In this document: piece by piece, positions 2,516 to 64,000 of the stretch | Position numbering within the stretch: position 1 is the first letter of the stretch | How the letters are laid out: the number at the start of each line of letters is the position of its first letter | IMG/VR virus record: IMGVR_UViG_3300022698_000267 | Location: 124,001 to 188,000 of that record | Direction: 5' to 3' (one strand) | DNA length: 64,000 nucleotides | Program-made: the position numbers and the translations under genes | The notes under the pieces: model-generated | The model's database searches: none | What the model was told of the DNA's origin: nothing | Seen by the model: only the letters and a program-made list of their open reading frames with translations

Positions 2516-2544
2516 TTGACAAAACCTCTAATTTTTGTTATATT
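2516..2544 (+). promoter_or_regulatory. sigma70-type promoter (copy 2)
   Basis: TTGACA-17-TATATT. Confidence 0.8.
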
Positions 2545-2582: not shown

Positions 2583-3074
2583 ATGCAAATTCGAATCAAC
2601 ATTGAAGACGATATGGCAAAAGTGGATGAAAAGGCTATCCTGGAGAAGTTAAATACTTCCTTTAAGCAATATCCAAATAATTACATTTCATCTTTATTTA
2701 CTCAAGAGTTTGTTGATTGGTGTTCCTGGAGGATTAAGAATGATTTCCCTCTCGATGTGATGGAGTACATCAATGCTTATGAGGAAGATAAAGATGCCCG
2801 AGCAGAACGTGATTTGGCCCAGGCTGAAGCAGATTCTAAAGAAGAACTTCTTGAAGTTCGGGATCAAATTATACGAGATAGAGAGGAAGAGATTTTAAAG
2901 CTTCATGAACAAATTGAAATCATGCAATCCAAGATGGATACAATGGTTGATCGAATCGTTTTTGAGGCTATGAGCAGGGAAAGAGACAAACAAGACCAGG
3001 CTTATGCAAGGTTGGAACAAGAGAATAAAGACTTGAAAGCCCATCTTTATGATTTAATGACAAAAAAATCTTGA
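2583..3074 (+). CDS. hypothetical coiled-coil protein
   Basis: 163-aa ORF behind promoter, GGAGG RBS. Confidence 0.7.
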   Translation: MQIRINIEDDMAKVDEKAILEKLNTSFKQYPNNYISSLFTQEFVDWCSWRIKNDFPLDVMEYINAYEEDKDARAERDLAQAEADSKEELLEVRDQIIRDREEEILKLHEQIEIMQSKMDTMVDRIVFEAMSRERDKQDQAYARLEQENKDLKAHLYDLMTKKS

Positions 3075-3128
3075 TAATATAAGTAAAAGATACTAAAACA
3101 TATGTAAATTAATGAAAGGAGAGACGTG

Positions 3129-3173
3129 ATGACAGCTTTTTATTTTCCGTAGATACGTGACCCGCCGTTTTAA
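3129..3173 (+). CDS. putative leader peptide with internal amber (MTAFYFP*IRDPPF)
   Basis: AAAGGAG RBS about 6 nt upstream; TAG at 3150-3152; ATA CGT GAC CCG CCG TTT TAA follows in frame. Confidence 0.55.
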
Positions 3174-3222
3174 TCTCCGGTCCAAACCCTCTGGTACTAC
3201 ATCTAAAAAAGGAGATTAGAAA

Positions 3223-3567
3223 ATGGCAAAGTACGAAATGAAGGAAGATCTTAAAGCATTAGCGTCGAGGATAAGAAATGGGAAATCCGGAAGGAAACCC
3301 AAATTTAGGACTGAAACAAACACTCAGGATTACAACGATTTAGACCGTCTTCGGTATCAATTCAGACATATGCACATCGCACATTGTCTTCTACGTGGCC
3401 GCAAGATGGAACAAATCGAGCGTCCCAGGGAAGACAACCAACCTAATGACGCTACAATTTACGAATACATTAAGCAGTATAGACCAAAAGATTGGAAGAT
3501 TAATTTTAAGCATACTTTCGATGGTTTGGAAAGTTTTATTGTTGAAGAAAAGAAGGAGGCTGCCTAA
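3223..3567 (+). CDS. phage hypothetical protein upstream of the PTH2-like gene
   Basis: AAGGAG RBS; RHMHIAHCLLRGRKMEQIE motif. Confidence 0.75.
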   Translation: MAKYEMKEDLKALASRIRNGKSGRKPKFRTETNTQDYNDLDRLRYQFRHMHIAHCLLRGRKMEQIERPREDNQPNDATIYEYIKQYRPKDWKINFKHTFDGLESFIVEEKKEAA

Positions 3568-3860
3568 TGGAAAAAATGTATGTTCTTATACGAAAGGACT
3601 TGTCTAAAAGTCAGCAGGCCGTCCAAGCTGGACATGCCGTGGCAGAGTACGTTCTACGGGATTAGGGACTTCGTTGGACTAACGGAACGCTTATCTACTT
3701 GGCAGTTAAGAACGAAGATGACCTTAGACATTGGGAAAAGAAGTTAATGGATTGTAATCAATTGTACGTAACATTTCGGGAACCTGATATTGGTTATCAG
3801 AGGACAGCTATTGCAACTGTTGCTGGCGGCGAAATGTTTAAAAACGAGAGATTGCTTTAA
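3567..3860 (+). CDS. peptidyl-tRNA hydrolase type 2 (PTH2)-like protein with in-frame amber at codon 33
   Basis: Manual translation: MEKMYVLIRKDLSKSQQAVQAGHAVAEYVLRD*GLRWTNGTLIYLAVKNEDDLRHWEKKLMDCNQLYVTFREPDIGYQRTAIATVAGGEMFKNERLL; TAG 3663-3665; absent from the ORF track. Confidence 0.75.
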
Positions 3861-3866
3861 ATGGAT

Positions 3867-3944
3867 TGCGTCTGTAGCTGAGAGGTTCAGCGGTGGACTC
3901 TAAATCCACGTCAACGTAGGTTCGAATCCTACCAGACGCACCCA
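3867..3944 (+). tRNA. amber suppressor tRNA, anticodon CTA
   Basis: Acceptor GCGTCTG/CAGACGC, D stem GCTG/CAGC, anticodon stem GTGGA/TCCAC with loop CT-CTA-AA, T arm GTAGG-TTCGAAT-CCTAC. Confidence 0.9.
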
Positions 3945-3964: not shown

Positions 3965-3993
3965 TTGACAAAACCCCTCAAATATACTATAAT
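3965..3993 (+). promoter_or_regulatory. sigma70-type promoter (copy 3)
   Basis: TTGACA-17-TATAAT directly after the tRNA. Confidence 0.85.
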
Positions 3994-4465: not shown

Positions 4466-5077
4466 ATGTTCAAGAATTTTAAAGTATTGGGATCTACTAC
4501 TGGAAGAGTAAGTTCGAAGAAACCAAATTTTTCATCTCCTCCAAGATCTATTAGTGATGCTGAAAAAGAAGTTCAAGGATTCAAGTTTTTTAAATTAGAT
4601 CCTGAAAAGGAGCACACAATTCGGATGCTGCCTGATGTTCCGAAGGCAAAATTTAATAAGAAAGGATTATTTTTCGGAGAGGCTAAATGTCCCATATGTG
4701 AAGCATTAGAGGAAAGGAAGAAGAAAATGTCGAAAAATCGAAATTTCATGAAAGAGGCAATCGAAATTATATCCCTCAACCCAAATCTGTACAAAGAGAT
4801 TCTGGAAGAGATTGTTCGTAAACGTCCTTCAGCCATTGTTCGGGCTTTCGAAAAGATTCAGAAGGATGAAAAAGGGTCAAATCCCAATCAGGTGGAACTA
4901 AAATGGTTGGAAGAAGTTAAGAAGTTGTTATCTGATGGTCGAAAGATCGAAGCCATTAAAACTTACCGCTATTATGCACAAATTGGTCTTAAAGAGGCCA
5001 AAAAGGCTGTGGATGAACTTGAAATGAAATTGATACGTGGAAAAGGATTCCCTTATCGAAAGTACCCACATGTTTAA
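4466..5077 (+). CDS. mosaic hypothetical protein with C-terminal ribosomal L7/L12-like domain
   Basis: C-term GRKIEAIKTYR..GLKEAKKAVDEL; N-term TTGRVSS..PN and FFKLD..HTIRMLP..CPICE segments. Confidence 0.6.
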   Translation: MFKNFKVLGSTTGRVSSKKPNFSSPPRSISDAEKEVQGFKFFKLDPEKEHTIRMLPDVPKAKFNKKGLFFGEAKCPICEALEERKKKMSKNRNFMKEAIEIISLNPNLYKEILEEIVRKRPSAIVRAFEKIQKDEKGSNPNQVELKWLEEVKKLLSDGRKIEAIKTYRYYAQIGLKEAKKAVDELEMKLIRGKGFPYRKYPHV

Positions 5078-32774: not shown

Positions 32775-33055
32775 AGAGGTAAGAGGTTGGGGAACCTAAT
32801 TATAAAATGGGAGGTAGCAAATGGAAAAAGTAAAAGGAGTAGACAGGAAGACTTACAAAAAAGCGCTTCGGTATCTTTCGAAGAAATTCGGTCTCAAGAA
32901 GTCAGATTTTGAATTCGAGGCAGCCTGGATTGATGAGTACGTTCGTTGTCTCCTTTTCAGCATCATCAATGAGAAATCCCGTCTGTACAAAAGCACCGTT
33001 GGCTACCAGCTGTAGTCGATTTCTACAAGCCCCCACTTCTGGGGGCTTTTTCAGC

Positions 33056-33219
33056 CTAACTTAATGAACAAAACGTCTAGCGAGACCCGCCTGCATGCCG
33101 CTAACTTAATGAACAAAACGTCCTGCAGAGCCCAGCGGGTCCATCGCTAACTTAATGACCAAAGGCGCTAGGGTGGACCGTGGTGGCCCGGCGGCCACTC
33201 CTCTAACTTAATGACCAAA
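33056..33219 (+). repeat. 4 x CTAACTTAATGA(A/C)CAAA separated by GC-rich spacers
   Basis: Core motif at 33057, 33102, 33148 and 33204. Confidence 0.9.
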
Positions 33220-33281
33220 AAAGCCTTTCAGAGTCAGCCACGTAAGTAGATAAATTAAAACCTTCTATAAAGGAGGAATAT

Positions 33282-34135: not shown

Positions 34136-37100
34136 GTGATGTCACTTGATGTTAATATTCGTCTTCAGGATAAGCTTGAGAGATCTACCATTTTTAATCA
34201 CAGTCTTAGAGCTTTTCTATTATCACTCCTAATTGTGCTAGGGTTGTACAATCTGAATCTATTTCATCTAACGGGATCACTTATTCCTGTAATAATATCA
34301 ATGTCTTTGTTTCTACTGACTTGGAACACTCGTAATTTCATCAATAATCCTTACATTACTTTTATGGGGATGTCTTGTTTTTTCATAGGTTTGTTTTCAC
34401 TTGGTCATATTGTATTCTATCATGGTGCAAATCTTATAGTACCTATCGACGCTACCAGGTTGGTACGAGTAACAGGATTATTTGCAGATATAATACAAGG
34501 ATTTTCTTTTTTACTAGCACCATTATTCTTTGTTGCTAGAGTGAAATTTAGAATTCTATTTATTATAATTTCTGTTTTTCTACTATCAATGTTGTACTTT
34601 TCTATTTCGATTGATCCAGTATTCAAGTATTACATTGTTTTTAATTTTACCAGTATACAGATATTTATGGTACAGGCAGTACTATTAATTTGTGCTTTAT
34701 TCTTGACATTTAGAATAAGAGAGGCATTTGATAAAAAAACCTTCTACTATCTTCTAGCTTCCATGGTATGTTGTTTAATTTCTGGAATCTCCTATGTGTT
34801 AAATGACCCATTTACAACATATCATGCTATAATTACAATCGTCTTTAATATTCTGACTCTTTTATTTTTATATGACGCTATTATCACTACTGTTTTACTA
34901 AATCCTTATTCCAGTTTAGCTCAGAGTCTAATTACAAGTAAGAAATTGATAAATAATTTAGATTCTATGTATACTAATCTATTTGAAAATATAAATGCTG
35001 GTGTAGCTATATTTAGACCAGAACATGGTAATTTCACTTTGATTTCTATTAATAGAACGGCTTTGGAACTAGATGATCTTGATATTAGGGAGGTATTGGG
35101 TCGTAAAGTAACGGAAATTTGGCCTTCTGTAAAAGAATATGGTATATACGAAGCATTTGAGCACGTTCGAGATACTGGAGATTCTGTGGAATGGCCCACT
35201 TCTTTATATGAGGATGAGAGAATAAGGGCATGGAGAGAAAGTTTTATATATCAACTAGAATCTGGTTTACTAGTGTCGGTATATACAGATAGAACAGATG
35301 AGAAAGAACAGGAAGAGAAATTATTAGAAAGTGAGAGAAGATATAGAACAGTAGCCGAATTTACATACGATTTGGAATATTGGGTTGCTCCTGATGGTTC
35401 ATTTCTTTATATATCTCCGGCATGTGAGAGAATAACGGGGTATACGGTCGAAGAGTTCATGAATGATCCTGAATTAATGGATTCTATAATTTATCCGGAG
35501 GATAGGTTTAAATCTTGTTCTATGAACTCTAAAGATGATGGAACTCTTAATGTAAATTCCACAGAGTTTCGAATAAAGACTAAAAATCATCTGACTAAAT
35601 GGATAGGACATATTTGCATGAACATCTACGATGAAGATGGCACCTATCTGGGAATTCGAGGTAGTTCCAGAGATATTACAGGTAAAAAGGAAGCTGAATT
35701 GGAGGTACTAAGAAGTAAAGCTCTTTTTGAAACCCTTTTTGATGCTCTTTCCATACCTATCTTTCGTAAAGATTTGGAAGGTCATTACGTAATGTTCAAT
35801 AAGGCTTTTTGTAATTTCTTCGAAAGAGATAAGGAGGAATTACAAGGTATTTCAGTCTATGATTTACATACTAAAGAAGTTGCTGATATTTGTATGAATA
35901 GAGATAAAGCTTTGCTGCTATCTGGAGATTCTATACAATCATATACTATTGGAGTGAGGACTAAAAACGGTCTTAGGCAGGTCATTATTAGAAAGTCACT
36001 TTTGAAGGATCATGATGATGTTATAATTGGCTTTGTAGGAGGTGTTTTCGATATTACTAAATTAAATCAATTACAGAATCAATTAATGTCTGAGAAATTA
36101 CTTCATGAAGAAGCACAGAGAGTGGCTAAATTGGGTCATTGGGAATTTGTTAATGGTGATAAGTTTCCTAATTGGTCTGATCAGGTTTTCGAAATATTTG
36201 GGGTATCCAAGACTGCAAAAGGGTTATCTATTGAAGATTGGAAGACCATAATAGACCCTAGAGACTACGATATGGTCATAGATGCTTTTAATACGTGTAG
36301 ATTAGAAAATAGGTCCTTTGAAATAGAATTCAGGGCCATTAAATTTGATACTAAAGAACCAAGATGGTTGTATACTATTGGACGTTGTGTAGAAGATACC
36401 GAACCTAAAAGGGTTTATGGAATCGTTCAGGATATTACAGATTACAAGGAAGCACAGATCTCCTTACATTCTACAGAATTTAAATTCAAAACGTTGATAG
36501 ATAATCTGAATGTTGGGATATACAGTTGTACTGTTGGAGAAAAAGACACAAAGTTTATTGAGGTTAATGATGCTTTAGTTAGACTATTGGGTGCTAAGAA
36601 TAAACAACAATTGTATAAGTTACGACCTAAAGACTTCTGGCTAAATCCTGAAAAACGTGATCTACTTTCGTTTAGACTTTTAAAATATGGTAAAATCCGC
36701 AATATGGAGCTACAATTAAGGACTCTAGATGGTTCTAAAATTACAGGTTTAGTATCTGGTGTTGTTGTCCACGATGATGAATCTAAACCCATTCGCACTG
36801 ATATGATACTGGAAGATATTACACAGAGAAGAAACCTGGAGATACAGTTACAACACGCTGTTAAAATGGAGGCAGTTGGTAGATTTGCTAGTAAATTGTC
36901 GCATGACTTTAATAATCTATTGAGTATTCTACAGGGCTATTCAGAGATACTAAAGAAGGAGTTACCGGAGGGTCAAAATCGTCAGAGAGCAGAGTTAATA
37001 CATAAGTCTTCCATCAATGCTCAGAAGTTAATATCCAGGCTTCTAAAGTTTAGTCGTAAAGAGGTCCTGGAGGTTCATAATGTCAACATACAGAAGTTCT

Positions 37101-38011
37101 TAGATGTGTTCTATACATCAGTCAAAGGATTCCTATCTGAAAATATACAACTAAAATTTATATCAGAAATTGAAAATACTTATTGTAATATGGACATAGC
37201 CCAGATGGAGCAGGTATTAATGAATATAATCGTTAATGCTAAAGACGCTATGCCAGATGGAGGTTCGTTACTTATAGAATGCATTTCTATCAATGTTGAT
37301 GATGAATTCACCTCTTCGAAACCCCATCTTAATTCTGGAGGTTACGTTTGTATTAAAATTGGAGACACTGGTCATGGAATGTCTGATGAAACAAGATTAA
37401 ATATCTTCGAACCATTCTTTACTACTAAAGCTAAAGGAACGGGATTAGGTTTATCCACAGCCTATGGAATAATAAAACAACATGGTGGTGATATATGGGT
37501 CTACAGTGAATTAGGGAAGGGCACAACCTTCAAGATTTATCTACCCATTGTTTCTAAAGACTCCTATGCACCTAAAGTAGATGAAAAGATTCAAATACTG
37601 GATACGAGTTTACATGGAGATGAGAATTTGATAATTGTAGAAGACGATCGTGCCCTGCTTACAATGTTCACAGATATATTGAGTTCTTCTGGATACTATA
37701 CTATGCCGTTCACTGATGGAGATCAATGTCTTGAAGCTATGGTCTTGACGGACGTTATTCCTGATCTGGTCGTTAGCGATTATGTTATGCCAGGAGGGTA
37801 TAATGGACAGCAATTATGTGAAGAGTTGTTGGAGTTATATCCTGATATTAGAATAATACTAATGTCTGGATATTCAGAGAAGTTAAATGGAAGTACTAGG
37901 GTTTCAGGGAAGATCAAAGCTTATCTGGAGAAACCCTTTTCGAATAGAGAATTGTTACAGCTTGTTAGAACTCTTTTAGATGAAAGAAGGAGGTCAATAG
38001 ATGAGAAGTAA
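34136..38011 (+). CDS. hybrid sensor histidine kinase: membrane (MASE3-like) region, several PAS domains, HisKA, HATPase, REC
   Basis: About 8 TM segments; YISPACERITGY; SHDFNNLL H-box; NIIVNAKDAM, DTGHGM, FFTTK.KGTGLGL; VEDD..SDYVMP..KPF. Confidence 0.92.
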   Translation: MMSLDVNIRLQDKLERSTIFNHSLRAFLLSLLIVLGLYNLNLFHLTGSLIPVIISMSLFLLTWNTRNFINNPYITFMGMSCFFIGLFSLGHIVFYHGANLIVPIDATRLVRVTGLFADIIQGFSFLLAPLFFVARVKFRILFIIISVFLLSMLYFSISIDPVFKYYIVFNFTSIQIFMVQAVLLICALFLTFRIREAFDKKTFYYLLASMVCCLISGISYVLNDPFTTYHAIITIVFNILTLLFLYDAIITTVLLNPYSSLAQSLITSKKLINNLDSMYTNLFENINAGVAIFRPEHGNFTLISINRTALELDDLDIREVLGRKVTEIWPSVKEYGIYEAFEHVRDTGDSVEWPTSLYEDERIRAWRESFIYQLESGLLVSVYTDRTDEKEQEEKLLESERRYRTVAEFTYDLEYWVAPDGSFLYISPACERITGYTVEEFMNDPELMDSIIYPEDRFKSCSMNSKDDGTLNVNSTEFRIKTKNHLTKWIGHICMNIYDEDGTYLGIRGSSRDITGKKEAELEVLRSKALFETLFDALSIPIFRKDLEGHYVMFNKAFCNFFERDKEELQGISVYDLHTKEVADICMNRDKALLLSGDSIQSYTIGVRTKNGLRQVIIRKSLLKDHDDVIIGFVGGVFDITKLNQLQNQLMSEKLLHEEAQRVAKLGHWEFVNGDKFPNWSDQVFEIFGVSKTAKGLSIEDWKTIIDPRDYDMVIDAFNTCRLENRSFEIEFRAIKFDTKEPRWLYTIGRCVEDTEPKRVYGIVQDITDYKEAQISLHSTEFKFKTLIDNLNVGIYSCTVGEKDTKFIEVNDALVRLLGAKNKQQLYKLRPKDFWLNPEKRDLLSFRLLKYGKIRNMELQLRTLDGSKITGLVSGVVVHDDESKPIRTDMILEDITQRRNLEIQLQHAVKMEAVGRFASKLSHDFNNLLSILQGYSEILKKELPEGQNRQRAELIHKSSINAQKLISRLLKFSRKEVLEVHNVNIQKFLDVFYTSVKGFLSENIQLKFISEIENTYCNMDIAQMEQVLMNIIVNAKDAMPDGGSLLIECISINVDDEFTSSKPHLNSGGYVCIKIGDTGHGMSDETRLNIFEPFFTTKAKGTGLGLSTAYGIIKQHGGDIWVYSELGKGTTFKIYLPIVSKDSYAPKVDEKIQILDTSLHGDENLIIVEDDRALLTMFTDILSSSGYYTMPFTDGDQCLEAMVLTDVIPDLVVSDYVMPGGYNGQQLCEELLELYPDIRIILMSGYSEKLNGSTRVSGKIKAYLEKPFSNRELLQLVRTLLDERRRSIDEK

Positions 38012-44171: not shown

Positions 44172-46622
44172 CTAAATAACATTTACATCACAAACTTCTC
44201 CATTGACGTTATCCTTATCATTCATATTCACAATTTTTGTACCAATAGAATATCTATTACGTATTGGTATATCTGAAATTTTCATCGACATTGTTGCATT
44301 TCCAGAAGTTAAGATTGTTACCCTGGAATCCTCTGTTACACACACGGCTCCTGCTATTTCTTTTTCTGGTTCATCCACTTTTAATAATGATAAACCAACT
44401 GACCCTCTGTTGGCAATTTTGAATTGCTCAATTTTTACTCTTCTTCCAAATCCATTTCTGGATACAGAAAATATTGAATGTTCATCGTCGTATACGACTT
44501 TTCCCATACTTATGATTTCATCACTGCCTTTCAAATTCATCCCTAAGAATCCCATAGCAGATCTGGTGGTTTTTATCTCTTTTATTTTCCCACAATTTAG
44601 GATTAAAACCATTGAATTTCTACTAACAAACATTATGTAGTCAGAGTCTGTAACTTCTTCCACTCCTAATAATTTATCATTATCCCTTAATGTTATAGCT
44701 TCAAGTCCTTGAACTACTTTTTTGCCTCGAAATAATGACATTGGAGATTTCTTTATGTAGCCATTTTTTGTTGCAAAGAAAAGATTTGTATCTTTTGCCT
44801 CTTCTGGTTTATAATGGGTTATGGAAGTTACGAATTCGGAATTTGTTTCAAATGGGTTTTTTCCAACTTTTTGTATATCGATTAAACCAGATATATGTTT
44901 TCCTTTAGCAGATCTACTCATTAGTGGAATATCTTCAACATTTAATATGAAGTATTTTCCAGTATTTGTAAATAGAAGTAGTTCATCATTTGAATCCACA
45001 GATATCATTGTTTTAATTAGATCTGAACCATGAACTATCCCTTTTCCACCCCTTTTTTGTGTTGGATACTCTGAAGCATTGGTGGTTTTAATATACCCTC
45101 TAGATGTTAGGGTAATTATTAATTTGGCAGAATCTAGTAATATTTTTTCTTTTTGGTCTTCAACTTCCTCTTCATTTAGGATTTTGGTTCTTCTTGGTCT
45201 TCCGTACTCATTCTTTATTTCCAACATTTCATCATTTATGGTTTTATCTAATTGCTCTTCCTCATCAATAATAGAATTAAGTTCCTTAACTCTTTTTGTA
45301 GCATTTTCATGCTCTTCTTTTATCTTCTTGTTTTCTATTTTTGTGAGTCTTTGTAAGGAAAGTCCTAAGATGGCTTTTGTTTGTTTCTCACTGGTTTTAA
45401 ATTTCTTTTGTATCTTTTGTTTTGCTATTTCAGAATCATCTGATTTTCTAACAATAGCAATAATTTCGTCAATATTTTTTGCTGCAATCTGCAAACCTTC
45501 TAATATATGCATTCTTTGCTGCAATTTTCTGGCTTCAAAGGCAGATCTCCTAAGAATTATATCTCTTCTGTGATCTATAAATGCTTCTATATAGTCTTTC
45601 AAATTTATTTGCTTTGGTTTATTGTCACTAACACATAGCATGTTAATGCTAAATGATGCTTCCAATGGAGTGTGTTTGTACAAACCATCTACGATGACTT
45701 TTTCCTGACTATTTCTCTTTAAACTAAGAACAATCCTGATTCCATTTCTATCCGATTCATCCCTAATCTCAGAAATTTCGGAAATACCCTTCTCAGTTAC
45801 ATAATGTCCTATTTTTTCAATCAAAGTAGTTTTATTAACAGAATATGGAATTTCCTTTATAACAATAGACTTGGTTCCATCTGGATTTGTTTCTATGTTA
45901 ACAACTCCATTGATTTTTATACTTCCACGTCCAGTTTTATATGTTTCTGAGATGGAGTCATTTACAAAAATAACTCCTCCAGTTGGAAAGTCAGGACCCT
46001 TGACAATTTTGCATAAATCTTCTATTGTTATTGCAGGATTTTTAATAGTAGCTATTATTGCATCTACTAATTCATTCAGGTTATGTGGTGGAATACTGGT
46101 GGCCATCCCTACTGCTATTCCAGAGGTTCCATTTAAAAGGAGATTAGGTATTCTGGTCGGAAGTATTTCTGGTTCTACAGTGCTACTATCGTAATTTTCT
46201 CTATAATCTACGGTTTCTTCGTTGAGATCCTTTGTAAATTCATCTGCTATTTTTTGTAATCTGCATTCAGTATATCTCATTGCTGCAGGTTTATCACCAT
46301 CTACAGACCCTATATTTCCTTGACCATCAACCAAGGCACTTTGCATGTTGAAATCTTGTGCCATTCGTATCAGGGCATCATATATGGCTCCGTCACTATG
46401 TGGATGGTATTTACCTATAACATCACCAACTATTCTAGCGGATTTTTTAAAAGGCTTGTCGTATCTATTGCCCAATTCTGTCATTGCATAGATAATTCTT
46501 CTGTGTACTGGTTTTAACCCATCTCTAATACTTGGAATAGTCCTTCCTACAATTACATTCATCGAGTAGTTCAGATACGATTTTTCAATTTCTTCTTTTA
46601 TGTCGACGTCGGTACTAGGCAT
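44172..46622 (-). CDS. gyrA: DNA gyrase subunit A
   Basis: [25 protein letters not shown] catalytic Tyr, GyrA box QKRGGKG, C-terminal repeats. Confidence 0.95.
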
Positions 46623-55320: not shown

Positions 55321-57681
55321 ATGGAAGAGCGATACGACGGAAATAACATAATTGTTTTAGAGGGTCTAGAAGCTGTCAAAAAGCGTCCAGCTATGTATAT
55401 TGGCAGTACAGACTATCGTGGTGTTCATCATCTGGTTTATGAGGTTCTAGATAATAGTATTGATGAAACTATGGTTGGTTATTGTGATCATATAAAAGTT
55501 CTAATTCACAAAGACAACAGTATTACTGTAATAGATAATGGTCGAGGAATTCCGGTAGATAAACATCCTACTGAAAATATGTCATCTTTAGAAGTTGTTA
55601 TGACAAAATTGCATGCAGGTGGAAAATTTGATCACAGAAGTTATAAAGTTTCTGGTGGACTTCATGGAGTTGGAATTTCTGTAGTTAATGCACTTTCTGA
55701 ACAATTAAAGGTTAGTGTTAGAAGGGATGGAAATTTATTTATACAGAATTATGAAAAAGGATTTCCTGTCACCGAATTAAAAAAAGGAAAAAAGACCAAT
55801 AAAAGAGGAACTACCATAAAATTTCGACCAGATGAAGACATTTTTGGTTCGTACAAAATAGATTTTAATATGCTATCCGAGAGGATGAAGGAACTAGCTT
55901 ATTTAAATGGTGGTTTACAGTTAGAACTTTTTGATGAACGTACTGGTGCAGAATCTTCTTTTAAATTCGATGGTGGAGTTAATAGTCTACTTAAAAAGTT
56001 GAATGAAGGCAAGAGAAATGTGCATCCAATCATTTATGATTCGGATTCAATGGATTCTGGTCTTTGGATAGAATTTTGTTTCCAATATACAGATGTTTCC
56101 AACACAAGAGTTCTATCTTTTTGCAATAACATTAAGACTCAAGAAGGTGGAACTCACCTCTCTGGTTTTAAAACTGCTTTAACAAGAACATTTAACTCTT
56201 TTATACAAGGTAGTGATTCCGTTGCAAAAAGATTGAAGCAATTTAGAATTAATGGAGAGGACATTCTAGCAGGTTTGTCTGCTATCATTAATGTCAAAGT
56301 GCCGGATCCACAATTTGAAGGACAAACCAAGACAAAGTTGGGAAATAATGATGTTTCTGGAGAGGTTAGATCTTTCGTTGGGGGTAAATTAACCACTTAT
56401 TTAAATGAGAACCCAAAACATGCAAAATCTATTGTAGAAAGATTAATTCAATCTACCAGAGAAAGAGAAGCAGCCAGAAAGGCTAAGGATATTATTAGAA
56501 AGAAATCAGGACTTTCACATCTTCTGATATCCAGTAAATTGGCTGATTGTCGTAGTAAAAATGTTAAAAAGCGAGAACTATTTATTGTTGAAGGTGATAG
56601 TGCTGGTGGTTCTGCTAAACAAGGTAGAAATCCAGAATTTCAGGCTATATTGCCATTAAGAGGTAAAGTTTTAAATATTGAAAAAGCAGATACACACAAG
56701 ATTATTAAAAACAAAGAGATTCAAAATTTAATTGCTAGTCTAGGTGTGGGTTTTGGTGATGACACTGATGTCAATAAACTTCGATATGACAAAGTCATTA
56801 TTATGACAGATGCTGATATTGATGGAGCTCATATTAGAACTTTGCTTCTAACTTTCTTTTTTAGGCAATTTGTTGAGATTATAGAGAATGGACATCTGTA
56901 TATATCACAACCACCTTTATATAGAGTCTATAAGAAAGGATTTGAAAAATTTCTTTCTGATGAGGCTGATTTAGAAGAATTTCTATTGGAGGATTCTATA
57001 GATTTTCTTGCTGTAACAAATGGAAAAAAGACTTATACAAAGAAAACTTTACAAAATTTCTTACTTCGAATTAGAGAACTTATGAGACTTTTTTCTAGAG
57101 CATCCGATTTTGGTATACCAAAAGAATTGTTTAAACTGATTCTACTATATGAAGACCTTTCAGTTAATTTAAATTCTAAATTTGAACCATTTAAGAAGTA
57201 TATGAAAAAGAATGGTTTTTTTCTAGAATTAAAATCGAATGTTATAGAAGATGAAGATCTACCTTACTTTCTATTACAATATGGAAGAAAGAAGGTTAAA
57301 ATTCCAATTGATTTCTTCAGATCCAATTTGTATAGGAATTCCTACAAGATTTTGAGTCGAATAAAACTTGATAGTCCGACATTACAATTTAAACTTCCTT
57401 CAATAGAAGAAGAATTAAGTTACGAAGAATTGTACGTCAAAAGTTTAAATCTTCTGCGTTCTAAGTATTCTATTCAACGTTATAAAGGTTTGGGGGAAAT
57501 GAATCCAGAACAGCTTTGGAAAACCACTATGAATGCAAGAACTAGAAATCTTCTACGAGTAACAATACCAGATGCAGAAGCAGCAGATAGATCTTTTAGT
57601 ATGTTAATGGGTGGTAATGTTGAAATCAGGAGGAATTTCATTGAGAGCTACTCCTCCAATTTTGAATTTCTAGATATTTAA
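55321..57681 (+). CDS. gyrB: DNA gyrase subunit B
   Basis: LEAVKKRPAMYIG, EVLDNSIDE, LHAGGKF, VEGDSAGGSAKQGR, MTDADIDG, RYKGLGEMN. Confidence 0.95.
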   Translation: MEERYDGNNIIVLEGLEAVKKRPAMYIGSTDYRGVHHLVYEVLDNSIDETMVGYCDHIKVLIHKDNSITVIDNGRGIPVDKHPTENMSSLEVVMTKLHAGGKFDHRSYKVSGGLHGVGISVVNALSEQLKVSVRRDGNLFIQNYEKGFPVTELKKGKKTNKRGTTIKFRPDEDIFGSYKIDFNMLSERMKELAYLNGGLQLELFDERTGAESSFKFDGGVNSLLKKLNEGKRNVHPIIYDSDSMDSGLWIEFCFQYTDVSNTRVLSFCNNIKTQEGGTHLSGFKTALTRTFNSFIQGSDSVAKRLKQFRINGEDILAGLSAIINVKVPDPQFEGQTKTKLGNNDVSGEVRSFVGGKLTTYLNENPKHAKSIVERLIQSTREREAARKAKDIIRKKSGLSHLLISSKLADCRSKNVKKRELFIVEGDSAGGSAKQGRNPEFQAILPLRGKVLNIEKADTHKIIKNKEIQNLIASLGVGFGDDTDVNKLRYDKVIIMTDADIDGAHIRTLLLTFFFRQFVEIIENGHLYISQPPLYRVYKKGFEKFLSDEADLEEFLLEDSIDFLAVTNGKKTYTKKTLQNFLLRIRELMRLFSRASDFGIPKELFKLILLYEDLSVNLNSKFEPFKKYMKKNGFFLELKSNVIEDEDLPYFLLQYGRKKVKIPIDFFRSNLYRNSYKILSRIKLDSPTLQFKLPSIEEELSYEELYVKSLNLLRSKYSIQRYKGLGEMNPEQLWKTTMNARTRNLLRVTIPDAEAADRSFSMLMGGNVEIRRNFIESYSSNFEFLDI

Positions 57682-59964: not shown

Positions 59965-62900
59965 ATGTCTGGTTTCTTTGGATTTTTCAGGGGTGCAGCT
60001 TCATATGGCCTTGGTAGTGAATCCAGGTTAGAAGGGTTTATTCATGGTTTAAATGACTTTGTTGAGAGTGGTTCTAATCCACTACCATATGCTAATAGAA
60101 TTGTTACCCCAACAATTGATTTTGCATCTGGTCCTTCTGGATTCATTACTAAAATTTCGTTGGGAGATGCACGAAATTCACACCTTTTTCGTTCTGCTAA
60201 ACTTGCTGCAATGAATTCTAACATTCCGACTATGCCTATGCAAGATGCCAGACTTGGAGAATTCTCTATTGTTACAAATCCAGAAGCTTATGGGGGCAAT
60301 TTAGAAGCTGCATCTATTGGTCATGCTTTAAATTCCTATATATCTGTTATGGGAATGCAAGATCCAAATCTAGCCACGTTTCTTACTGAAGGTTCTCTTA
60401 GAAATAAAACGCAGTTTAATCCGATACAGAATTTTTTGGCTTCTGAATTTCGTTGGCAGGATAGTTCTCAGAGTATGCAAGATAGAAATTTATTCTACTC
60501 TAATCAATTTCTTGGAACGATGGATGTATACGGACATCCTAGTGGAGGTGAATTTCAAGGACAAAGAGCACATCCAGAGAGATGGGGTGATACTAATCTT
60601 CTACGGAGATTAAATCCTGGCATAAATGATCTAATAAATTCTATTTCAATTGATGATTCTGCTTCTGGTATTAAAGCTGGTTTTGAAAAACAAATGCTTC
60701 GTGTCAAACATTCGGCAGATAGTCAATACGAAAACATTCATGATTTTGCTACACCTAATACTATAATTTCAAGAAGTCAACTTTCAGGAACAGATTTTGA
60801 TAGACCTGTACAGACTGATGCCGATGTTGAAGGAAGACCAGATGTAACACCCACCGATATTATCAATAGAAGTGGTGAAGGAATTGCTTCTGTACTTGCA
60901 TCTACCACAGGAACGACACTCGATGTTTACAATTCAGAAACTGGTGAGCTTTTGCATACACAAAGTCCGTCAGGAACTACAAGACCATCGACAGAAGCTC
61001 CTACAGAAGGAAATGTTCCAAGTTCTGGTGAGGCAGCAAGTGGAAATATTTACGTTTTCGCTGATGGTTACATTCCAGATCCAGATTTTGCAGATGAAGA
61101 AGAATACATTAGGAATAGATATGGAGACGAAGCTGCAAATGCTTTTACTGAGGGTCGTTATGCCTCTTCTGTTGAAGATGCTGAAAGAATGTCTAGAGCT
61201 GGTGGACCAGAATCTTCAGAAGGTGTTCGACCTAGTGGAAATCCTGAAGTTAGACACACAGACACACATTCAATAGACAATACTCCTCCCAGTTTACAAG
61301 ATACACCTACTCAAAGAACAGGTCGTCCAGGTCCATTTTCTGAATCTGGTGGTTTCAATGTAAACTATGAGGATTTTGATAGTGCAGCAAGGGCTCAGTA
61401 TGATGAACGTAATGTTAACGTTGTTGATTCACCTTCTTCTATAGATACAAGTGCTATAAGAATCATATCAGAAGCAGAATATGATGCTCTTGAAAAGCGT
61501 TATCCTATTGGTGGAATTGGTCATCAGGAGGAAGGTTCACATTTAGTTAGCACACCAGATGCTGTGCATGCAGTAAATACCCTTCGTGACATTCAAAAGA
61601 GCTTTGGCTTGGCCAATGATTCTGACAGAAGATTTTATGAGAATATAGGGAAAAATGCTATAGGAGAAAGAAATTTTTCGGTACATTCTGGTGAGTTGGA
61701 CACAGTAACTAACAAAATTAAACGAAAGATGATGTTGGGTGGAGCTATAGTTGGAAGATCTGAAGAAGGTGGACATTTATGGTTAATGGATGAACCATTA
61801 AACAGTCTTTGGGAAGTGGGAAGTTCAATGAGTAATCGTCCACAAGATTTTCCACGTCCTAACTTTCGTACCATACAAGATACACCAATTCCAGAGATGG
61901 ACCCAAATCCTGATAACTGGCGTATACGAAATATGGACATTAGTATGCGGGATGCTATGGGAAAGGGATACATCATGCCGATTGGTGGGCGTGATGCCGT
62001 TTTTTTGCCTAGTTTTGCTAACCCAGATTTTAGTATGGGTGTAGAAATAGAATCATTTCTTACTAGACCAATTTCTGAAATCACTCGTGGAATTCAACAG
62101 AACTATGGTTATAATCTTAATCATATGGCTTTTAATGGAGAATTTAGTTCCCATAATGACCCATCCGTTTATGGTGGTGGTAAAGAATACATAACTCCGG
62201 TTATGTCTGGACTCAGAGCTTTTAAAGCAGGATATCTTCTTGGGGAACAGCTAAAGTCTCTTGGAGATGTTCCTCCAATACATAGAGGTCCAGATAGATT
62301 TGACACTTCAGGTTTACATGTAAATATAGGAACCATTCCAGCGTATAATAAAAAGAATGCTTTCAAATTTTCTACTGATATGTTGCGATTACAGGAAGAT
62401 GTAATAAAACGAATGTCAGAACCGGATGTCAGATACAATTACTATTCTAGACCAAGTACGGGAGGTCAGTATTCCCCTTATAATTCTACAATAAAACCTG
62501 AAAGACTTCCTCCAGATGCTCGTAGTTCTCCACATGAGGAACATGGAAGACAGTTTTGGTCTCAATCCATTTCTAAATTTAGGTCTGCTGGAAGAACGAA
62601 TGAATATGATTACTACAGAAATAATGGAAAACATTATTCAAATGTAGCTCTTGAGATGTCAATGTCAGATGTTGGCAAATTGGCAAAGTACAAAACGTTT
62701 GGTATGCATAAACTTCAATTAATGGGTTTAATGGAATACAGGTCTCCAATGTATGTTCCTGGTGGTGATCATGTTTTAGCATCTATGGCAATGGGAACTA
62801 AATTAGCTGCAGACATTTTTCAAGCATCACAAAATCATGGTGCATTTGCTAGAACAAATAAATTGATTCCTCCTATTGGTGGTTGGTTTAATGGTGATAA

Positions 62901-63045
62901 GAACGTGTTTAATAATATTGCTGAAAACTTCCTAAATATACGAAATCCAGTCAATCAGGAATTTATGTGGCAAATGCATCAAAAATGTGGACAGGTTACA
63001 ATGCCACCAGATGCAAATACTCTTAGAAGTCAAGGAATATATTAG
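59965..63045 (+). CDS. large protein with C-terminal putative amidoligase (COOH-NH2 ligase type 2-like) domain
   Basis: MGVEIE, KEYITPVMSG, TSGLHVNIG, LMEYRSP; low-complexity middle. Confidence 0.7.
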   Translation: MSGFFGFFRGAASYGLGSESRLEGFIHGLNDFVESGSNPLPYANRIVTPTIDFASGPSGFITKISLGDARNSHLFRSAKLAAMNSNIPTMPMQDARLGEFSIVTNPEAYGGNLEAASIGHALNSYISVMGMQDPNLATFLTEGSLRNKTQFNPIQNFLASEFRWQDSSQSMQDRNLFYSNQFLGTMDVYGHPSGGEFQGQRAHPERWGDTNLLRRLNPGINDLINSISIDDSASGIKAGFEKQMLRVKHSADSQYENIHDFATPNTIISRSQLSGTDFDRPVQTDADVEGRPDVTPTDIINRSGEGIASVLASTTGTTLDVYNSETGELLHTQSPSGTTRPSTEAPTEGNVPSSGEAASGNIYVFADGYIPDPDFADEEEYIRNRYGDEAANAFTEGRYASSVEDAERMSRAGGPESSEGVRPSGNPEVRHTDTHSIDNTPPSLQDTPTQRTGRPGPFSESGGFNVNYEDFDSAARAQYDERNVNVVDSPSSIDTSAIRIISEAEYDALEKRYPIGGIGHQEEGSHLVSTPDAVHAVNTLRDIQKSFGLANDSDRRFYENIGKNAIGERNFSVHSGELDTVTNKIKRKMMLGGAIVGRSEEGGHLWLMDEPLNSLWEVGSSMSNRPQDFPRPNFRTIQDTPIPEMDPNPDNWRIRNMDISMRDAMGKGYIMPIGGRDAVFLPSFANPDFSMGVEIESFLTRPISEITRGIQQNYGYNLNHMAFNGEFSSHNDPSVYGGGKEYITPVMSGLRAFKAGYLLGEQLKSLGDVPPIHRGPDRFDTSGLHVNIGTIPAYNKKNAFKFSTDMLRLQEDVIKRMSEPDVRYNYYSRPSTGGQYSPYNSTIKPERLPPDARSSPHEEHGRQFWSQSISKFRSAGRTNEYDYYRNNGKHYSNVALEMSMSDVGKLAKYKTFGMHKLQLMGLMEYRSPMYVPGGDHVLASMAMGTKLAADIFQASQNHGAFARTNKLIPPIGGWFNGDKNVFNNIAENFLNIRNPVNQEFMWQMHQKCGQVTMPPDANTLRSQGIY

Positions 63046-63051
63046 TTTACT

Positions 63052-64000
63052 ATGGATCTTCAGAGAATAGCTTCTTATACCAAAGATCTTTTAGACAAAC
63101 ATGGTGTTTACCTTAATGTTGACCCAGATGTTTTGGCATCTGTTTCACGTTCTGATCCGAGTGAAGTAAAAAAGATTTCGCAGAAGGAGACATTCGAAGC
63201 ACCTGGAGGCTTAGATTTTAAGATTCCTAGACAAGCTACATCTGTTCCATTTATAACTGGAATAAATGGAAATAATCTAAGTTTGATGACCTATCAACCT
63301 GGTTTTAAACAATATAGACCAGAATCTTGGGCATTTGGCCCTTCTACACATGGGGCTATGACACCAACCAGATTACATGACTTTAGATCTGAAGTAAATA
63401 GAATCAATAGAAGCCGGTTTCCAAATGGTTTGAATATTGATAGTATGAATTTAATTAATATTAGAAATGAACCATTTGACAGAGAGGGCTTGCAAAGGGT
63501 TCTTCAACATGGAGCAATAGTACCTTTAAGCTCTAATAGAGGAGCCTTCATTCCTAATTTTGGAATATCATCAAACTTTTTTTCCTATGAATATGAAGGT
63601 CGATTTAAAACTGATCTTGATCTTGGTTATGGACCATCTGAACAAGGAAAATTCGATTCTTTAGTGACCAATCCAATTGAAAAGAATTTTGGAGTTAATG
63701 TAAAAAATCTTCTCCCCTATGATTTTGGAAGCCAGAACTCTTACAAAGCATACAATGATGGTTCTATTTCTGAGAAACCTGGTAGAAAATCACAGGAGGT
63801 TGTAGTTGGATCTGCTCCAATGTCTAATCTACTAATGGCTTCTGATATGATGTTTGGTGCTTGGCAGAAGGAAGGAATGTTACATCCAGATGACATACCA
63901 ATGGATAGGTCTGCTGGAATGCACATTAGTACAACATTGCCTAATCTTGCTGGTAGTGGAGCTTATGAAGTACAAAAAGGCATGTCTAATTACTTAAACA
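63052..64000 (+). CDS. partial large ORF, in frame with the upstream gene across a TAG
   Basis: No stop to the window end; DRSAGMHIST resembles the amidoligase GLHV motif. Confidence 0.65.
   Translation, partial: MDLQRIASYTKDLLDKHGVYLNVDPDVLASVSRSDPSEVKKISQKETFEAPGGLDFKIPRQATSVPFITGINGNNLSLMTYQPGFKQYRPESWAFGPSTHGAMTPTRLHDFRSEVNRINRSRFPNGLNIDSMNLINIRNEPFDREGLQRVLQHGAIVPLSSNRGAFIPNFGISSNFFSYEYEGRFKTDLDLGYGPSEQGKFDSLVTNPIEKNFGVNVKNLLPYDFGSQNSYKAYNDGSISEKPGRKSQEVVVGSAPMSNLLMASDMMFGAWQKEGMLHPDDIPMDRSAGMHISTTLPNLAGSGAYEVQKGMSNYLN

Follow-up and report, generated by a model that had tools for sequence, protein, structure and literature searches.

An amber-containing leader conserved in uncultured large phages as a candidate sensor of stop codon suppression

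The DNA examined here, called the window throughout, is a stretch of 64,000 nucleotides (nt) covering positions 124001-188000 of IMGVR_UViG_3300022698_000267, an IMG/VR contig of 273,563 bp from a large phage. A spacer of 148 nt between two of its genes holds a very short open reading frame (ORF), the leader, whose frame passes through an amber codon (TAG) and then encodes an Arg-Asp-Pro-Pro motif. It is followed on the same strand by a gene for a 114-residue protein (ORF114), a PTH2-like gene and a tRNA gene with the anticodon CUA.

The leader starts with ATG at 3129, continues with ACA GCT TTT TAT TTT CCG, reaches TAG at 3150-3152 and proceeds through ATA CGT GAC CCG CCG TTT to TAA at 3171-3173, which places RDPP three codons from the end. 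A GTG at 3126 is a possible alternative in-frame start. An earlier note, made from the letters of this DNA alone, had described the Shine-Dalgarno (SD) sequence, the amber-containing ORF and the position of the motif, and a re-reading of the sequence matches it exactly. The parts of the locus, with their proposed roles, are as follows.

2516..2544, + strand: sigma-70-like promoter TTGACA-17-TATATT upstream of the 163-residue ORF; 11 of 12 positions match
2583-3074, + strand: ORF of 163 residues (ORF163), the upstream border of the spacer that holds the leader
3089..3099, + strand: GATACTAAAAC, a putative phage-specific promoter motif that precedes the leader SD by about 16 nt
3115..3121, + strand: leader SD AAAGGAG, 7 nt before the ATG; invariant in all five loci of alignment A1
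3129..3173, + strand: leader ORF MTAFYFP-TAG-IRDPPF-TAA, 14 codons; from direct sequence reading and homologous leaders
3150..3152, + strand: TAG, the putative gate codon, with the Pro codon CCG before it and A after it
3153..3167, + strand: I-R-D-P-P codons, a putative RAPP-like arrest motif; from synonymous variation in relatives and the published competence of the motif
3164..3178, + strand: predicted anti-SD arm GCCGTTTTAATCTCC, from the last base of the first Pro codon through TAA and TCTCC
3211..3227, + strand: predicted SD/AUG arm GGAGATTAGAAAATGGC, with the ORF114 SD AGGAG (3210-3214) and start codon (3223-3225)
3223..3567, + strand: ORF114, 114 residues, the downstream border of the spacer and the regulated gene in our proposal
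3567..3860, + strand: PTH2-like ORF overlapping the ORF114 stop at its start codon (TAATG), with an in-frame TAG at 3663-3665
3867..3944, + strand: tRNA(CUA), with an amber suppressor anticodon, 7 nt past the PTH2-like stop

Occurrence of the leader at related loci

The pattern of an in-frame TAG followed within 15 codons by R-x-P-P, with no intervening TAA or TGA, occurs twice on both strands of the window, and the second occurrence (33081) lies inside an unrelated repeat array. At this frequency about 0.002 occurrences are expected in a spacer of 148 nt.

Relatives were found by separate routes. When homologues of ORF114 were retrieved by protein similarity alone and their contigs then fetched, every close relative carried the leader. 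Its sequences are given below (asterisks mark stop codons).

Window and L004: MTAFYFP*IRDPPF*
L006: MHIFYFP*IRDPPNIF*
L009: MKTFYFP*IRDPPHLF*
L011: MPSDFP*VRGPP*

Among these close relatives the changes after the TAG are mostly synonymous (ATA/ATT, CGT/CGA, GAC/GAT, CCG/CCT/CCA), and the spacer 3′ of the leader diverges freely. The GATACTAAAAC motif is kept in L006 and L009.

The second route was a scan for the DNA pattern that was blind to gene neighbourhood. It added four low-GC lineages (L014, L015, L054 and L057), each with an ORF114 homologue after the leader. In L015, L054 and L057 a PTH2-like gene and tRNA(CUA) are present as well; L014 ends soon past its ORF114 homologue. In three of these lineages two in-frame TAGs precede RGPP, for example MKWT*TNFP*IRGPPISF*. 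Most matches of the metagenome scan and the one other match of the viral scan were discarded as high-GC chance matches, and L018, which is low in GC, was discarded for lack of an ORF114 homologue.

Finally, searching with a profile built from ORF114 homologues (A2) yielded another 48 IMG/VR loci and three contigs from metagenome-assembled genomes (MAGs), 51 loci together. A short ORF with one or two in-frame TAGs and then Pro-Pro lies at most 260 nt upstream in 42 of the 48 IMG/VR loci, against 0.07 expected per locus, and in all three MAG loci. The strict pattern from TAG to RxPP reaches 1.67 per kb upstream of ORF114 homologues and 0.011 per kb elsewhere, an enrichment of about 157-fold. Of the six exceptions, five have near variants ending in RSP-stop, RGQP-stop, RGP-stop or RASP-TAG, and one, L059, lacks a leader. 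L002 had been a candidate for a leaderless locus, which was rejected when the systematic scan revealed a leader, MTQM*ISHSKKPP*, overlapping the end of the upstream gene. The earlier note had judged the arrangement unlikely to be chance and had pointed to related loci as the place to look for conserved leaders; the low expectation in the spacer and the leaders recovered from the IMG/VR and MAG loci bear it out on both counts. Judged from these sequences, the leader family is widespread in uncultured large phages.

One contig assigned to an archaeal bin deserves mention. L107 (JAOZSQ010000001.1, 426,929 bp, in a Thermoplasmatota MAG bin) carries the leader MR*INRSRGPPGDL with an ORF114 homologue, a PTH2-like gene, tRNA(CUA) and other tRNAs. 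It is probably a mis-binned megaphage.

Leader grammar, arrest motif and downstream helix

The full set comprises 49 unique leaders, 45 of which we call unbiased since they were not ascertained by the DNA pattern. The grammar of the peptide is conserved across them: in the homologous leaders the frame that runs from the start through TAG to Pro-Pro and the final stop is never closed by TAA or TGA. One TAG precedes Pro-Pro in 35 of the 49 leaders and two do so in 14. Of the 63 TAGs, 62 have a purine as the next base and 47 are followed by an Ile or Val codon; on the other side, Pro (20) and Thr (16) are the most frequent residues just before TAG. A Pro before the stop and the identity of the next base both weaken RF1 termination and favour suppression (PMC6412442). 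By analogy, the context of the window TAG, with CCG before and A after, is one of apparently weak termination and suppression-friendly.

Two endings predominate. RxPP is found in 28 of the 49 leaders, with a sense codon next in 22 and a stop in six; [K/R]PP is found in 19, directly followed by a stop in 18. The two remaining leaders have another residue before Pro-Pro and then a stop. Within the unbiased set RxPP accounts for 24 of 45, and most others end [K/R]-P-P-stop. The residue x of the unbiased RxPP leaders is G in 13, D in six, S in three, A in one and K in one. Their Arg is encoded by AGA (12), AGG (2), CGT (5), CGC (3) and CGA (2), Ser at x by both TCT and AGT, and at each Pro position three or all four Pro codons are used. 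Since the same residues are written with varied codons, selection acts on the peptide and not on the nucleotides, and the codons past TAG must therefore be translated. The earlier note had supposed that I-R-D-P-P is translated by amber readthrough, and the synonymous changes together with the use of both Arg codon families support this at the level of sequence. ORF114 homologues hold almost no TAG in frame, and the nine close ones hold none, so the TAGs of the leaders are not merely the background of a recoded genome. We also considered mimicry of a tRNA T-arm by the conserved core; it was rejected because the window sequence has no such stem.

The arrest requirements of RAPP-like motifs are known from published work (PMC12992588). 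Arg is essential and irreplaceable. Arrest is strongest, and depends least on context, with Gly in place of Ala (RGPP); RDPP and RSPP permit it in part, and elongation factor P (EF-P) gives no rescue. RGPP, RAPP, RDPP and RSPP are also among the most avoided tetrapeptides of bacterial proteomes (PMC12992588). The residue x falls in this permissive set (G, D, S, A) in 23 of the 24 unbiased RxPP leaders. The assignment of a RAPP-like motif in the earlier note thus agrees with the range of residues that PMC12992588 reports as arrest-competent, and by this analogy the leaders would be competent too. With the stall geometry of PMC10951233, the window leader is predicted to stall with the P site holding the first Pro codon (3162-3164) and the A site the second (3165-3167). 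A Pro at the C-terminus impedes termination according to references cited in PMC6412442, and by analogy the [K/R]PP-stop leaders would pause at termination after Pro-Pro.

Downstream of the motif the RNA folds back on the start of ORF114. Both the minimum free energy and the centroid structures of the window pair 3164-3178 (GCCGTTTTAATCTCC) with 3211-3227 (GGAGATTAGAAAATGGC), a duplex of -19.9 kcal/mol. The ORF114 SD is the most occluded of the 62 recognisable SDs in the window, with a probability of being unpaired of 0.0005 versus a median of 0.36. In nine of nine folded lineages the pairing partner of the SD lies at the Pro-Pro codons or immediately 3′ of them, and the arm sequences are entirely different. 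The Pro codons themselves (CCU CCU) are the anti-SD in L014, L015 and L054, and the Pro codons also serve in L062, where GGUCCUCCUUGGAUUGA forms a 16-bp duplex of -30.4 kcal/mol with the SD region. Across the 49 unique loci, native pairs of arms average -15.9 kcal/mol versus -9.3 kcal/mol for cross-locus pairs, and none of 10,000 permutations was as good. The arms thus covary while the helix keeps its place at Pro-Pro, and the distance from Pro-Pro to the ATG stays within 56-91 nt, mostly 57-72.

A footprint model, in which a ribosome of 28 nt is slid along each of these leaders and the probability of an unpaired SD is computed, places the opening of the helix at the motif. The median probability is 0.19-0.20 when the RNA is free or the P site lies at least 15 nt upstream of Pro-Pro, climbs to 0.47-0.54 once the P site is between PP-3 and PP+15, and drops again further 3′. 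For the window the values are 0.17 with a ribosome terminating at TAG and 0.43 with a ribosome at the arrest site.

A terminator scan found none between leader and tRNA, nor was an attenuator found. The spacer has no Rfam family; the Rfam search matched only tRNAs. Transcription attenuation was therefore rejected as the mechanism of the leader, and control of the tRNA was dropped with it. Altered gene order at two loci leads to the same view of the target: in L096 and L097 the leader remains with the ORF114 homologue and not with the tRNA or PTH2, so ORF114 is the direct target. The earlier note had proposed that the leader controls the downstream genes including tRNA(CUA). The helix at Pro-Pro and the linkage of the leader support this for ORF114; for the tRNA the proposal finds no support in the terminator scan or in L096 and L097.

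Genes of the cassette and their surroundings

On sequence comparison, the leader, ORF114, the PTH2-like gene and tRNA(CUA) form a cassette that is evidently conserved. ORF114 has 232 homologues and is a conserved phage protein with the motif FRHxHIAYCLLRGR. It has no Pfam or PHROG family, no sequence match in the PDB and no significant Foldseek match. Its AlphaFold2 (AF2) model has a mean confidence (pLDDT) of 88.6; searches gave nothing but uncharacterised phage proteins in BFVD and weak helix-turn-helix (HTH) leads in the ESM Atlas.

A PTH2-like gene adjoins the ORF114 homologue in 48 of the 51 loci by tblastn, which replaced a regular-expression search that was too strict. The Pfam PTH2 family (PF01981) matches the N-terminal piece of the window ORF with E=0.011. 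The homologues score 16.4-22.7 bits against a gathering cut-off of 23, the uninterrupted ones 19.9-22.7, and the match holds up from one homologue to the next and spans most of the Pfam model. The two pieces of the window gene match one family across the TAG. This codon stands at different positions in different lineages (LRD*GLRW in the window clade, PDT*WKNG in L015, WET*ISS in L076), and it is absent from the gene in L057, L054 and L002. The TAGs of the gene fall in a variable loop. A TAG at three positions in three lineages suggests repeated selection for a suppression-dependent PTH2-like enzyme.

The tRNA(CUA) is present in 46 of the 51 related loci. In the window, which holds 19 tRNA genes, it has an apparent 8-bp acceptor stem followed by C and CCA. 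The other 18 all end N73-CCA after 7 bp, and none closely resembles tRNA(CUA). Beside the tRNA cluster, 4466-5077 (+) encodes a protein with a segment like the C-terminal part of ribosomal protein L7/L12.

As to transcription, the sigma-70-like promoter at 2516..2544 could give one transcript of ORF163, the leader, ORF114, the PTH2-like gene and tRNA(CUA); the next sigma-70-like promoter, at 3965-3993, lies just past the tRNA. A candidate promoter motif, AATACTAAAAC, lies just 5′ of the leader and recurs between genes. With GATACTAAAAC at 3089-3099, ATACTAAAA begins at 3090. The window contains nine matches to GATACTAAAAC with at most one mismatch versus 1.7 expected, all on the + strand, intergenic and upstream of genes, of the form AATACTAAAA(C).

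GATACTAAAAC-like sites, + strand: 3089, 17215, 20046, 21490, 23255, 33510, 33677, 51097, 55154

This class is distinct from the perfect sigma-70-like promoters (TTGACA-17-TATAAT) at 3965 and 8521. From its recurrence and position, the AATACTAAAA / AATACTAAAAC motif is probably a phage-specific promoter class.

Most genes of the window have no in-frame TAG, and TAG is the stop of 12 of the 66 long ORFs called. At least one of these 12 clearly reads on past it.

59965-64000, + strand: large ORF with an in-frame TAG at 63043-63045, then at least 318 open codons to the end of the window

No Pfam match was obtained for this ORF. Its length past the TAG means that the phage reads TAG as sense in at least some genes.

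Other features of the window stand apart from the cassette. The second TAG-to-RxPP occurrence falls within 33056-33236, where four direct repeats CTAACTTAATGA[A/C]CAAA stand 45-56 nt apart with GC-rich variable segments between them, in a genome of 37% GC and just past a terminator-like hairpin (33027-33056); the region resembles a small repeat-spacer or small RNA array. A hybrid histidine kinase of 1291 residues is encoded at 34136-38011 (+), with a MASE3 membrane sensor, several PAS domains, HisKA, HATPase and a receiver domain, which is unusual phage cargo. An ADP-ribosyltransferase-like protein is encoded at 1298-2293 (+; PF03496, E=6e-10), GyrA at 44175-46622 (-) and GyrB at 55321-57681 (+).

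Proposed mechanism, alternatives and meaning

We propose, with a probability of roughly 0.7 on the sequence evidence, that the leader is a natural amber-suppression sensor built as an arrest-peptide leader, which reports whether TAG is decoded as sense. Without suppression, a ribosome would terminate at TAG 3150 and never get to the downstream helix, so that the SD and AUG of ORF114 would stay paired with 3164-3178, and ORF114 and the overlapping PTH2-like gene would be poorly translated. If charged phage tRNA(CUA) outcompetes RF1, or if RF1 is low, the ribosome would read through TAG and pause at R-D-P|P; the [K/R]PP-stop relatives would instead pause as they terminate. Once paused, the ribosome would cover the anti-SD arm, free the SD and AUG and so turn ORF114 on. 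The in-frame TAG of the PTH2-like gene may act as a second suppression-dependent gate. Readthrough, stalling, the ON direction of the switch and its biological purpose are steps that we infer, and all support for them is computational.

Several observations weigh against this proposal. RDPP is only partially permissive in the ApdA and ApdP contexts (PMC12992588) and is a weaker motif than RGPP, and the nascent chain at the predicted stall would be just 12 residues long. The 19 of 49 leaders with [K/R]PP have no Arg at the RAPP position, so that one RAPP mechanism cannot cover the whole family. In the window, the model opens the SD only in part (0.17 to 0.43) and folding gives a modest z-score of -1.4. 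From six loci aligned with MAFFT, RNAalifold yields a weak consensus of -0.35 kcal/mol because the register of the helix shifts between clades; per-locus folding, the footprint scan and the cross-locus duplex permutation replaced it. Neither blastn nor tblastn found a relative among 50,697 deposited phage genomes, and no cultured phage or host came to light.

A further difficulty is that the helix might be opened by ribosomes simply passing, or terminating close to the anti-SD, with no true arrest. TAG would then gate the entry of ribosomes into the helix, and readthrough would be coupled to unmasking as the ribosome passes, or terminates at the leader stop inside the anti-SD arm, with Pro-Pro serving to slow the ribosome or with the CCN CCN codons kept as anti-SD-like sequence. 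The lineages in which CCU CCU is itself the anti-SD speak for this, as do the many leaders that end PP-stop without RxPP and the broad plateau of P-site positions (PP-3 to PP+15) over which the SD opens. We nevertheless hold it to be unlikely, as RNA pairing gives no rationale for an Arg or Lys kept before Pro-Pro, the Arg through both codon families, or for an x drawn from G, D, S and A in 23 of the 24 leaders, which fits the known arrest requirements; moreover, the core of the window anti-SD is TCTCC and not the Pro codons CCG CCG. An input other than suppression is less probable again. The leader might sense EF-P, the supply of prolyl-tRNA or the capacity of peptidyl-tRNA hydrolase, in the last case by minigene-like drop-off with the PTH2-like gene as partner. 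In the bar minigenes of phage lambda an early stop promotes drop-off of peptidyl-tRNA; many leaders have their TAG at codon 3 (MT#, MK#, ML#) in a similar manner, 48 of 51 loci have a PTH2-like gene as neighbour, and Pro-Pro is a classic EF-P-dependent pause site. Such inputs leave unexplained why the stop is always TAG, for which a tRNA(CUA) is co-encoded in 46 of 51 loci, and why the amino acids after it are conserved, and RAPP-type arrest is reported to be insensitive to EF-P (PMC12992588).

It is very improbable that TAG is the true end of a seven-residue peptide and that what is conserved beyond it is an element of RNA or DNA, for instance a structured RNA or the binding site of a protein. 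Within the close clade TTTCCGTAG is indeed invariant in nucleotides, and TAG is an ordinary stop in 12 of the 66 long window ORFs, though at least one of them reads past it. Yet more than 45 lineages keep the peptide grammar and the frame rather than the nucleotides (Arg as AGR or CGN, Ser as TCT or AGT), no Rfam family matches, and the frame from start through TAG and Pro-Pro to the stop is always free of TAA and TGA. AT-rich spacers often contain short ORFs with SD-like sequences, but a chance ORF without function is effectively refuted by the expectation of about 0.002 for the spacer, by the 42 of 48 independently ascertained loci against 0.07 per locus, by the 157-fold enrichment of the strict pattern and by the codon use of the unbiased leaders.

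The amber-suppression sensor shares parts with several known systems. Like the RAPP-like arrest peptides ApdA, ApdP, ApcA and SecM and the RAPP/RGPP upstream ORFs of Streptomyces, the phage leader is a small upstream ORF on the same strand with a C-terminal R-x-P-P, and the SD downstream is part of a stem which stalling at the motif would break open, as folding, footprint and permutation suggest. Ile stands before Arg in the SecM motif GIRAGP as in the phage leaders, and the unmasking of an SD is likewise shared with ErmCL and SecM. In ApdP, too, Ile130 directly precedes R131-A-P (PMC10951233); the phage leaders have Ile or Val. The differences are equally clear. With 14 codons and no signal or transmembrane segment, release by a pulling force is impossible; the targets, ORF114 and the PTH2-like gene, are no Sec or YidC components, so that the leader is not itself a monitoring substrate; and many relatives end [K/R]PP-stop. 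The input would instead be the decoding of an in-frame TAG before the motif.

ErmCL, ErmBL and TnaC are also very short leaders in which a paused ribosome remodels the mRNA and turns on the next gene, and TnaC stalls at a Pro-stop termination step. The phage leader resembles them in its length and in a codon-specific pause that would remodel the mRNA, and its [K/R]PP-stop relatives may stall like TnaC; it differs in that it implies no small-molecule ligand, the condition being the passage of a stop codon. In the gene for RF2 (prfB) an early in-frame stop senses release-factor activity and sets downstream expression through a frameshift. The phage leader would use its early stop as a similar sensor of release-factor activity. 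Unlike prfB, it has no frameshift, would depend on competition between RF1 and a suppressor tRNA, and would act by an arrest that unmasks the SD of a separate gene.

The closest counterparts are engineered. Switches have been built with a TAG in a trp- or tna-type leader, such that an orthogonal tRNA(CUA) controls downstream expression, and multiplexed UAGs are recommended to sharpen the response (reviewed in PMC6412442). The proposed logic is identical, and 14 of the 49 natural leaders have two TAGs; the phage system differs in being natural and widespread, in acting on translation through SD unmasking rather than through Rho or a terminator, and in its RAPP-like pause. A survey of phage recoding described modules of code change consisting of tRNAs, aminoacyl-tRNA synthetases and release factors, and regarded the cellular mechanism of the change as unknown (bioRxiv 10.1101/2021.08.26.457843). 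Here as there, a phage suppressor tRNA lies in a standard-code region and TAG is sense in other genes; that survey mentions neither a leader nor a sensing device, and no partners of the PTH2-like or ORF114 kind. Full-text literature searches found no description of such a natural amber-gated arrest leader.

The roles of ORF114 and the PTH2-like protein are a matter of speculation: they might handle peptidyl-tRNA or the stalled ribosomes that suppression creates, or reinforce suppression itself. A tentative extension, which we consider possible but doubtful, is that the leader forms a checkpoint of the phage's genetic-code switch, releasing ORF114 and the PTH2-like gene once TAG is sense, and that ORF114 is itself an effector of the switch, for example an RF1 antagonist or a helper of the suppressor tRNA. 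If this were true, positive feedback would produce a sharp and irreversible shift from standard to TAG-sense decoding, to which the two-TAG leaders and the TAG of the PTH2-like gene would add ultrasensitivity.

What would be new about the amber-suppression sensor is an arrest-peptide leader with a new input, the identity of a stop codon, and the extension of RAPP-type arrest to viruses. As a conserved cis-element that would tie the expression of a gene to amber suppression, the leader lends itself readily to testing; it would be nature's equivalent of the amber-gated switches made in synthetic biology, and a small reporter of suppression or RF1 activity might be built from it. It would also single out ORF114 and the PTH2-like enzyme as two conserved partners whose expression is tied to the state of suppression, and it bears on how recoded phages time and enforce the change from the host code to their own.

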